Positions 44,502-46,163 of a stretch of DNA of 64,000 bases are shown one piece after another. A program made the translations under genes and the position numbers. The notes under the pieces were generated by a model. That model had not been told where the DNA came from and did no database searches. It saw only the letters and a list, made by a program, of their open reading frames with translations. Numbering within the stretch: the first letter of the stretch is position 1; every line of letters begins with the position of its first letter. The stretch comes from Fimbriosthenelais zetlandica (taxonomy: Eukaryota): contig OZ365115.1 in assembly GCA_977030845.1 (NCBI GenBank), positions 6,696,001-6,760,000 on the forward strand, in the 5' to 3' direction.

Positions 44502-44510
44502 TATATAAAA
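44502..44510 (+). promoter_or_regulatory. TATA box of the 65-aa secreted peptide gene
   Basis: TATATAAAA ~27 nt before an Inr-like ACAGTC. Non-coding exon 1 ends AAG|GTAGGT at 44571; exon 2 acceptor at 44666. Confidence 0.65.
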
Positions 44511-44691
44511 GACGTTCAAGACGTTAGACAGTCACAAAGGTGGGAACACTGAAAAGCACCGCTTAGAAAAGGTAGGTTTTCTCTATATTATCTTACGATT
44601 AGGAAATTAATTCGATTCAAATCTTGGGCGTTCGGTCAGCATTCTCATCTATTTTCTTTTTAAAGCTGAAGTTCGGCCCAAAGAAAAAAAG

Positions 44692-45595
44692 ATGCGTCTT
44701 ATCCTCATTACTCTCCTACTGGCTCTGAGTGAGTATTGCAATTATTTTCATAACTTATTTACCTTCTTGTTTGCTTTAATGTTTCGATATTAAGTTATTA
44801 TATGTTATACCTAACAGCACGCTTTAATATTATGATAGAAATGAACATGTTATATAGTTAAATTCCATTGCTTCTGAATTCAATGTTCTAGCTTATTTCC
44901 TCAAGTAAGAATTTCGTAACGGTCATGCACAATTATTCCATTTCAGGCCTTAAGGAAGCATATTCAAGGTAGGTTCCAAATGCTTGTTGATAATTTTACT
45001 ACATATACAGTAATTAGATTATACTGTAAAAGAAGTATAGAACACTAAAATATAAAATATTTTAAAAGTTATTTTAAAAAATCCTCTGTAGATCTCGGTA
45101 AAATGATTATATAATTATTTAAATGGATGTTTTCCTTCATCTAAGACCTAGATCAGTTGCGTGTCCAGAGCAAACCCCTGTTGGATGCATCTGTTTATCA
45201 GGAGAATTGACCTGTCTAGCGTGAGTTTACTTTCATTTAATTTTAATCCGTATGACTTGAAATACTGTAACAGTCCTAGCTTTACTTGGCATTGCTAGGA
45301 CTGTCCACCATTGCCCGGGGGCATTGATCATCACTATATTGATATATATGGTATGTGTCCTCCCAGAGGATCAGCGGCATTGATCAGCACTATGATTATA
45401 TATTATAATGTATATACATTCAGTGTCCTCAAATTCGCCGGGGGCATTGAACATATATATAGCATATATATTGAATATATAGCAGCAAACTATTCTTATT
45501 AATCTAGTATAATATGTTGTTTCAGGGAATTCCCGGAACCAAACCCAGAATCAGAGGGATTCGGAGAGCCTGAAGGGGAATTTGCCATACCCTAG
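44692..45595 (+). CDS. Small secreted cysteine-containing acidic peptide (65 aa), 4 coding exons
   Basis: Exons 44692-44728, 44947-44968, 45152-45220, 45526-45595 (198 nt; phases 1,2,2 consistent; donors GTGAGT, GTAGGT, GTGAGT). Product: MRLILITLLLALSLKEAYSRSVACPEQTPVGCICLSGELTCLAEFPEPNPESEGFGEPEGEFAIP*. TATA box upstream; AATAAA at 45840. Confidence 0.8.
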
Positions 45596-46163
45596 CTGAT
45601 ACTCGCAATGACAGCAGAATACAACAATGAGGAGCTTCAGTGAGTTCATTCAATTTGATTGAAATCAATTCATAATGTTATGTACACCTACTTGTATATC
45701 ACCTGTTTCCAAAACAATAACATCATTGTTATCCATACTGCAGGCAAAGTGACGATGTTGCGATTCGTTGAAAGAAGAAAGGCCATCCTGATACCAAAGA
45801 TGCCATAGAATGTACGGTCTAGCATCCTGTTCCTGGAGAAATAAATTATAAACCATTGATCAATATCATTATTGTCTGGAGATGAATCTTAAGCATTTCA
45901 TGCATGATTAATTTAAAGCGGTAATTAATGTCAAACATGGATCCACTAAAATTAGGCTAGTAAATAAAAATAACCTCATTGTTTAATAAATCATTCTGAT
46001 ATCAGGAACTGTATATATATATATTTGTTGTTATTGACTGATAGCACACGAACCTTAAGTCAGTAATGTTATAGTTATATGTCCTAATGCCCCGACGGAA
46101 GAATATTCACTACACCCATACGCCATATGTATCGGGCTTCAGGTATCAACAAACCTTGGCAGA

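Follow-up and report, generated by a model that had tools for sequence, protein, structure and literature searches.

The acidic tail of hirudin-type peptides binds a basic exosite. The first four cysteines of hirudin follow the spacing C-x7-C-x-C-x5-C, compared to C-x7-C-x-C-x6-C in the predicted peptide described below. In EGF-like domains, the C-terminal half forms a hairpin of the type G-x-C-x-C-x2-G-...-C, usually with a last loop of C-x-C-x8-C. LRRNT and SLRP caps are spaced C-x(2-4)-C-x-C-x(6 or more)-C, with 2-4 residues in the first gap between cysteines. Mytilin- and myticin-type precursors consist of a signal, a Cys-rich part and an anionic C-terminal extension.

In hirudins and hirudin-like factors, a signal peptide is followed by a head held together by disulfides and by an acidic tail, for which the last of four exons codes; in hirudin-like factors, six conserved cysteines form three disulfides within the central globular domain (PMC11564256). 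LRR caps carry a disulfide-pinned beta-hairpin, and they shield the repeat core, pack against it and are partly tied to it (PMC3542428).

The window analysed here is a stretch of 64 kb, which was examined on both strands (128 kb of strand). It is AT-rich, with a base composition of 34-45% GC per 2-kb window, and contains no runs of N. On its plus strand lies a locus that is predicted to encode a peptide built like hirudin, in that the product would be small and secreted, with a compact head stabilised by disulfides and, at the C-terminus, a long acidic tail in which Glu, Pro and aromatic residues are mixed. The putative gene also resembles the hirudin genes in that its coding sequence is split by three introns into four exons, the last of which carries the tail (PMC11564256); a non-coding 5′ exon is present in addition. 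However, the peptide has four cysteines compared to six in hirudin-like factors, and no sequence similarity was detected in a search of proteins of 36-114 aa or in the PDB; the only related entry in a fold search was hirustasin, at a non-significant E value of 9.8. Membership of the hirudin family was therefore rejected, as the defining six cysteines and any sequence similarity are missing. There is also no sign of a blood feeder, because the named organisms whose proteins come closest to those of the flanking genes are molluscs and a nemertean, with no leech among them. The likeness to hirudin is one of build, not of descent.

Organization of the putative gene

A TATA box, TATATAAAAG, was read from the sequence at 44502-44511, and the A of an ACAGTC initiator-like motif lies at 44530, 28 nt 3′ of it, which is the usual TATA-to-initiator distance. 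Because of this motif, the inferred transcription start and thus the beginning of the putative non-coding exon 1 are placed at 44530. Exon 1 (44530-44572; 46.5% GC) contains no ATG and has the donor AAAAG/GTAGGT, where the slash marks the splice site. Intron 1 (44573-44665; 93 nt; about 32% GC) has the acceptor tttttaaag/C with a pyrimidine fraction of 0.8, and since this acceptor ends at 44665, exon 2 begins at 44666.

Exon 2 (44666-44728; donor A/GTGAGT) consists of 26 nt of 5′ UTR and then, from the ATG at 44692, the predicted n- and h-regions of a signal peptide (MRLILITLLLAL plus 1 nt). The start codon is the first ATG of the putative mRNA, whose 5′ UTR is otherwise free of ATG, and its context is AAAG ATG C. 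After intron 2 (44729-44946; 218 nt; 28% GC) comes exon 3 (44947-44968), a micro-exon of 22 nt that encodes (S)LKEAYS(R), the predicted c-region, in which A-x-S occupies positions -3 to -1 of the signal peptide. This micro-exon is required for the frame, because skipping it shifts translation into a TGA within exon 4. Intron 3 (44969-45151; 183 nt; 23.5% GC) separates it from exon 4 (45152-45220; 47.8% GC), which encodes the entire module of four cysteines, (R)SVACPEQTPVGCICLSGELTCL(A). Intron 4 (45221-45525; 305 nt) is followed by the coding part of exon 5 (45526-45595; 52.9% GC), which encodes the acidic tail, (A)EFPEPNPESEGFGEPEGEFAIP, and ends with a TAG at 45593-45595.

Thus the coding exons, at 44692-44728, 44947-44968, 45152-45220 and 45526-45595, are 37, 22, 69 and 70 nt long, and the intron phases are 1, 2 and 2. 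The coding introns have the donors GTGAGT, GTAGGT and GTGAGT and the acceptors tttcag, cctag and tttcag (0.60-0.67 pyrimidines). The putative 3′ UTR (45596-45865) contains an AATAAA at 45840-45845, 245 nt past the stop codon, as well as a candidate intron of 104 nt at 45640-45743 (CA/GTGAGT ... tgcag/G).

These elements had been proposed in a sequence-only reading of the same DNA. The TATA box, the non-coding exon, the four small, phase-consistent GT-AG coding exons and the AATAAA were each found where that reading had placed them, and its junctions at 44728-44947, 44968-45152 and 45220-45526 agree exactly with splice sites and phase in the sequence.

Two further features of the putative gene were observed. 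Within intron 4, at 45310-45461, there are three degenerate direct repeats, 56 and 67 nt apart, that have a GGCATTGAnCA core followed by TA-rich runs. In addition, the exon 4 donor at 45220 is phase-compatible with the acceptor at 45743/45744, and such a join would exchange the acidic tail for AQSDDVAIR and a stop. Alternative tails arising through splicing are reported for some hirudin-like factor genes (PMC8516769).

The predicted peptide

When the named exons were joined by script, a precursor of 65 aa was obtained, the length given in the sequence-only reading. It reads MRLILITLLLALSLKEAYS up to the predicted cleavage site and RSVACPEQTPVGCICLSGELTC LA EFPEPNPESEGFGEPEGEFAIP after it. The signal-like start consists of M-R, then the twelve hydrophobic residues LILITLLLALSL, and then KEAYS/R, whose Ala and Ser occupy -3 and -1. 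Mean Kyte-Doolittle hydropathy is 2.9 over residues 3-13. By rule, this start has the classical features of a signal peptide, namely charge in the n-region, 8 or more hydrophobic residues in the h-region and small side chains at -3 and -1, and the -3/-1 rule places the predicted cleavage after Ser19.

The predicted mature peptide has 46 residues, a mass of 4838 Da (reduced; about 4834 Da with two disulfides) and a charge of about -8 (-8.3). All four of its cysteines are encoded by exon 4. The tail contains 7 Glu and no basic residue, and the Cys module, with one Arg and two Glu, has a net charge of about -1. The earlier statements that the Cys module occupies an exon of its own and that the tail holds 7 Glu without a basic residue were both borne out. 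More broadly, the proposal of a complete gene for a small secreted peptide with a four-cysteine head and an acidic tail is supported by the splice sites and their phases, the signal-like start, the in-frame stop and the polyA signal. Neither dibasic sites nor a Gly-basic amidation signal occur in the 65-aa precursor, and for this reason it is proposed that the entire 46-residue product would be released.

A genuine gene or a chance alignment of sites

The strongest rival to a genuine gene is that plausible splice sites, a hydrophobic stretch led by an ATG and very small open exons happen to be aligned in AT-rich DNA that is neither transcribed nor translated. With coding exons of 37, 22, 69 and 70 nt, open frames come cheaply, which favors this explanation. 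An expectation was set with a spliced-model enumerator. It called for an ATG with a signal-like first exon, GTRRGT donors and YAG acceptors with at least 60% pyrimidines, and it was limited to models with exactly three introns, each 80-400 nt long, and a product of 55-130 aa. With these strict sites, one model was returned from both strands of the real window, the peptide gene at 44692-45595. Under the same strict criteria, dinucleotide-preserving shuffles (n=60) gave 0.017 models per window, and this low expectation speaks against chance. When the signal-like requirement was dropped, there were 0.65 models per shuffle, and the real window gave the peptide model, three NCAPH2 starts and one model on the minus strand. 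With looser sites, 2.4 models were found per shuffled window compared to 8 in the real window, numbers that count on the side of chance. The evidence from the enumerator is suggestive only, because its thresholds were fitted after the model had been seen and because chance models are common with looser sites.

Base composition provides a test that is independent of those fitted thresholds. The exons have 41-53% GC compared to 23.5-35% in the introns, and every exon is richer in GC than both adjoining introns. The resulting exon-intron contrast of +0.186 was set against 136 chance-type models, which are three-intron models from the same window outside known genes and have a mean contrast of 0.026 +/- 0.06. 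A contrast of +0.186 was reached by 1 of the 136, which argues against a chance alignment, and all exons were GC-richer than the flanking introns in 6% of them.

Single promoter and polyadenylation motifs are frequent, which favors chance: TATAWAWR alone occurs 0.7 times per kb per strand, and AATAAA occurs once per kb. The pairing of TATAWAWR with CA[GC]T[CT] at 17-24 nt is rare, being found at one plus-strand and one minus-strand locus in the window. The plus-strand locus is the putative promoter of the peptide gene, and such a rightly spaced pair of TATA box and initiator-like motif counts against chance.

Codon usage was also scored. Over the whole CDS, the log-odds are +12 bits compared to -9 and -13 in the other frames. 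By exon, the tail exon scores +11.5 (P about 2e-4), a value that weighs against chance, and the Cys exon scores -3.6, an absence of signal that a chance model would explain. This test is given little weight, because only the Glu/Pro-rich tail contributes to its signal and because it had little power on a positive control. Chance is further favored by the lack of any homologue or orthologue in the searches described in the next section, and is disfavored by a product that is biochemically sensible throughout. Taken on its sequence features, the peptide locus is probably a genuine gene, and a chance alignment is unlikely.

Homologues and genomic neighborhood

A word-indexed search of 5.8 billion proteins with the 65-mer, over a length range of 36-114 aa, returned no homologue and no shared words. 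The exact 65-mer is absent from a collection of 15 billion proteins, from which the proteins of the source genome itself are apparently absent too. No second copy or paralogue of the peptide region was found within the window, so the region is not repeat- or transposon-like, and an origin from a transposon was rejected on the same ground.

The flanking genes have recognizable relatives, by which the source organism falls among the lophotrochozoans. The protein encoded by an intronless Roco gene (MFHAS1-like) shares 62% and 60% identity with proteins from two unannotated ENA assemblies, 40-50% with those of molluscs and 41% with one from the nemertean Lineus. The nearest readable relative is ENA assembly ERZ25767047, of which about 45 kb of contig ctg38834 was compared. 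This contig is collinear with the window at 17439-30146, where Roco is nested in an LMF2 intron, LMF2 and NCAPH2 form a head-to-head pair, and NCAPH2 follows; between the two, the LMF2 exons share 75-88% protein identity. Past NCAPH2, ctg38834 carries other genes, including an exon with an Alpha_adaptinC2 domain, and neither the peptide nor the gene for a 1145-aa protein that neighbors it in the window is present. That neighbor has its sole clear orthologue (P0001) in ERZ26222911, and another homologue (P0126) was also found. At the locus of a distant homologue of the 1145-aa protein (L009), no peptide-like exon lies within 10 kb. Altogether, no orthologue of the peptide was found in about 100 kb of relatives' DNA. 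This is a weak negative, because the gene order shared with the nearest readable relative stops before the peptide locus.

Several other features were observed in these regions. In ctg38834, a retroelement occupies an NCAPH2 intron (12226-16633 of the compared locus, L007), and no such insertion exists in the window. It has a 506-aa ORF, an RVT_1 ORF and a tyrosine-recombinase-like ORF with a weak Phage_integrase match, which is a DIRS-like layout. In the window, on the plus strand at 40943-41135, the TAG that closes the 1145-aa ORF overlaps a GTAAGT donor, and a tttcag acceptor at 41120 would add a terminal exon of five codons ending in TGA; the real protein of this gene therefore probably ends differently from the ORF. 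On the minus strand at 41877-42119, there is an 80-aa Thr-rich, mucin-like ORF that ends in a hydrophobic segment and contains 21-nt tandem repeats at 41983-42038. Possibly this ORF is one exon of a gene for a small membrane mucin, situated between the 1145-aa gene and that of the peptide. Just 3′ of the peptide gene, at 46164-46603, lies a 222-nt tandem repeat in two copies that match at 79%.

Predicted structure and comparison with other small peptides

Structures were modelled from single sequences and from exon pieces only, with a few intron-encoded residues included. For the stop-free stretch 45123-45221, AlphaFold2 predicted a beta-hairpin, CICL-SG-ELTC, with strands at residues 22-25 and 28-31. 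The pLDDT of the hairpin is about 80, and the block means for the last 13 residues, within which the hairpin lies, are 82 and 76. For the tail piece, no secondary structure was predicted and the pTM was 0.15. A Foldseek search against the PDB gave no meaningful match (best E value 8), the hirustasin match (E 9.8, probability 0.06) being noise. A PDB sequence search with the exon pieces returned nothing, and the best score among ESM Atlas features for these pieces, 0.70, is likewise noise. A Pfam-A hmmscan of the exon 4 module at E values up to 10, which has low sensitivity at 22 aa, matched no family, LRRNT and EGF included.

A C-x-C...C hairpin does not discriminate between families, because LRR caps, hirudin and the C-terminal half of EGF domains all have one. 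The peptide recalls an EGF domain in the local motif GCICLSGxxxC and in the predicted two-stranded hairpin, but it has four cysteines, not six, its last loop is two residues shorter, and Pfam EGF was not matched. A broader likeness is to the orphan small secreted cysteine peptides of marine invertebrates, with which it shares a short multi-exon gene, one or more separate signal-peptide exons, an even number of cysteines and a lack of detectable homologues. These orphan peptides are a category, not a family. The category accounts for the missing relatives and is silent on function.

The precursor could instead contain one active part, with the acidic tail acting as a protective propiece of the mollusc antimicrobial type or being itself the released product. 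The order of signal, Cys-rich part and anionic extension is that of the mytilin- and myticin-type precursors, but the Cys module is not cationic, with its net charge of about -1, and no dibasic or other obvious processing site separates head from tail. This arrangement is accordingly given little credence. An antimicrobial-peptide precursor was rejected because the head is not cationic, and a neuropeptide precursor was rejected because neither dibasic nor amidation sites are present.

The least probable alternative is that the locus encodes a free-standing N-terminal LRR cap, or that it holds the opening exons of a larger extracellular LRR protein, the rest of which would lie farther away. The sequence-only reading had labelled the Cys module LRRNT-like on the basis of its cysteine spacing. 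The last two gaps (C-x-C and x6) do fit that spacing, and the CP...CxC-x6-C pattern, with a hydrophobic residue two before the last cysteine, recalls LRRNT, as does the predicted disulfide-pinned beta-hairpin, which caps also have (PMC3542428). The first gap, however, is 7 residues, not 2-4. The label was not upheld, since the module has no match to Pfam LRRNT (PF01462), even at E values up to 10, and no meaningful sequence or fold match in the PDB, and it would be free-standing with an acidic tail and no LRRs after it.

Downstream exons that would make the peptide the N-terminus of a longer LRR protein, an outcome that the same reading had allowed for, were also looked for. The gene is ended by the in-frame TAG and the AATAAA, and no LRR motif (LxxLxLxxN-type) was found on the plus strand from 45.6 to 60.4 kb, compared to 7 found by the same scan in the Roco gene used as a positive control. 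Given this stop, the polyA signal and the lack of LRR-type coding in the next 15 kb of the plus strand, the locus, to judge from the sequence, does not encode the N-terminal part of an LRR protein. The repeat core that caps shield is missing here, and an LRR cap is unlikely as a stand-alone fold because it is packed on that core and tied to it (PMC3542428).

Proposed mode of action and significance

The likely explanation is that the locus is a genuine gene of a narrow lophotrochozoan lineage that encodes a small secreted peptide. Transcription would begin about 28 nt 3′ of the TATA box, and four introns would be spliced out, one from the 5′ UTR and the other three from the coding sequence. 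The precursor of 65 aa would enter the secretory pathway co-translationally by means of a classical signal peptide and would be cut after Ser19. The first 24 residues of the product may form the short beta-hairpin CICL-SG-ELTC with two disulfides among Cys5, 13, 15 and 22, and the last 22 residues a disordered tail that is rich in Glu, Pro, Gly and Phe and has a charge of about -7. The stable knob would then present the tail as an electrostatic arm to a basic surface of another extracellular protein, or to cations. The anatomy of the locus and its unusual statistics are shown by the sequence; expression, the cleavage site, the disulfides, the disorder of the tail and any function are all inferred here. 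An electrostatic arm on a knob, acting as a protein ligand or inhibitor or as a cation binder, is the likeliest mechanism by analogy, and any specific target can be named with low confidence.

There is an outside chance that the peptide represents a new family of minimal "head-and-tail" extracellular peptides from a non-leech lophotrochozoan, which would serve as bivalent inhibitors or decoys directed at the basic exosite of a protease or receptor, and which would have arrived at the design of hirudin by convergence, though with one disulfide less. On present evidence, the peptide is of an ordinary kind, one of many lineage-restricted secreted peptides in marine invertebrate genomes.

If the gene is expressed, it would be another tiny multi-exon gene that is missed by both ORF-based and homology-based annotation. 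It would also mean that such genes can be found in raw sequence from the quality of their splice sites, the GC contrast between exons and introns, and promoter signals. Synthesis is feasible at this length, and hirudin owes its usefulness to the same build of a stable knob with an acidic arm; a binding partner, once defined, would thus have practical value.
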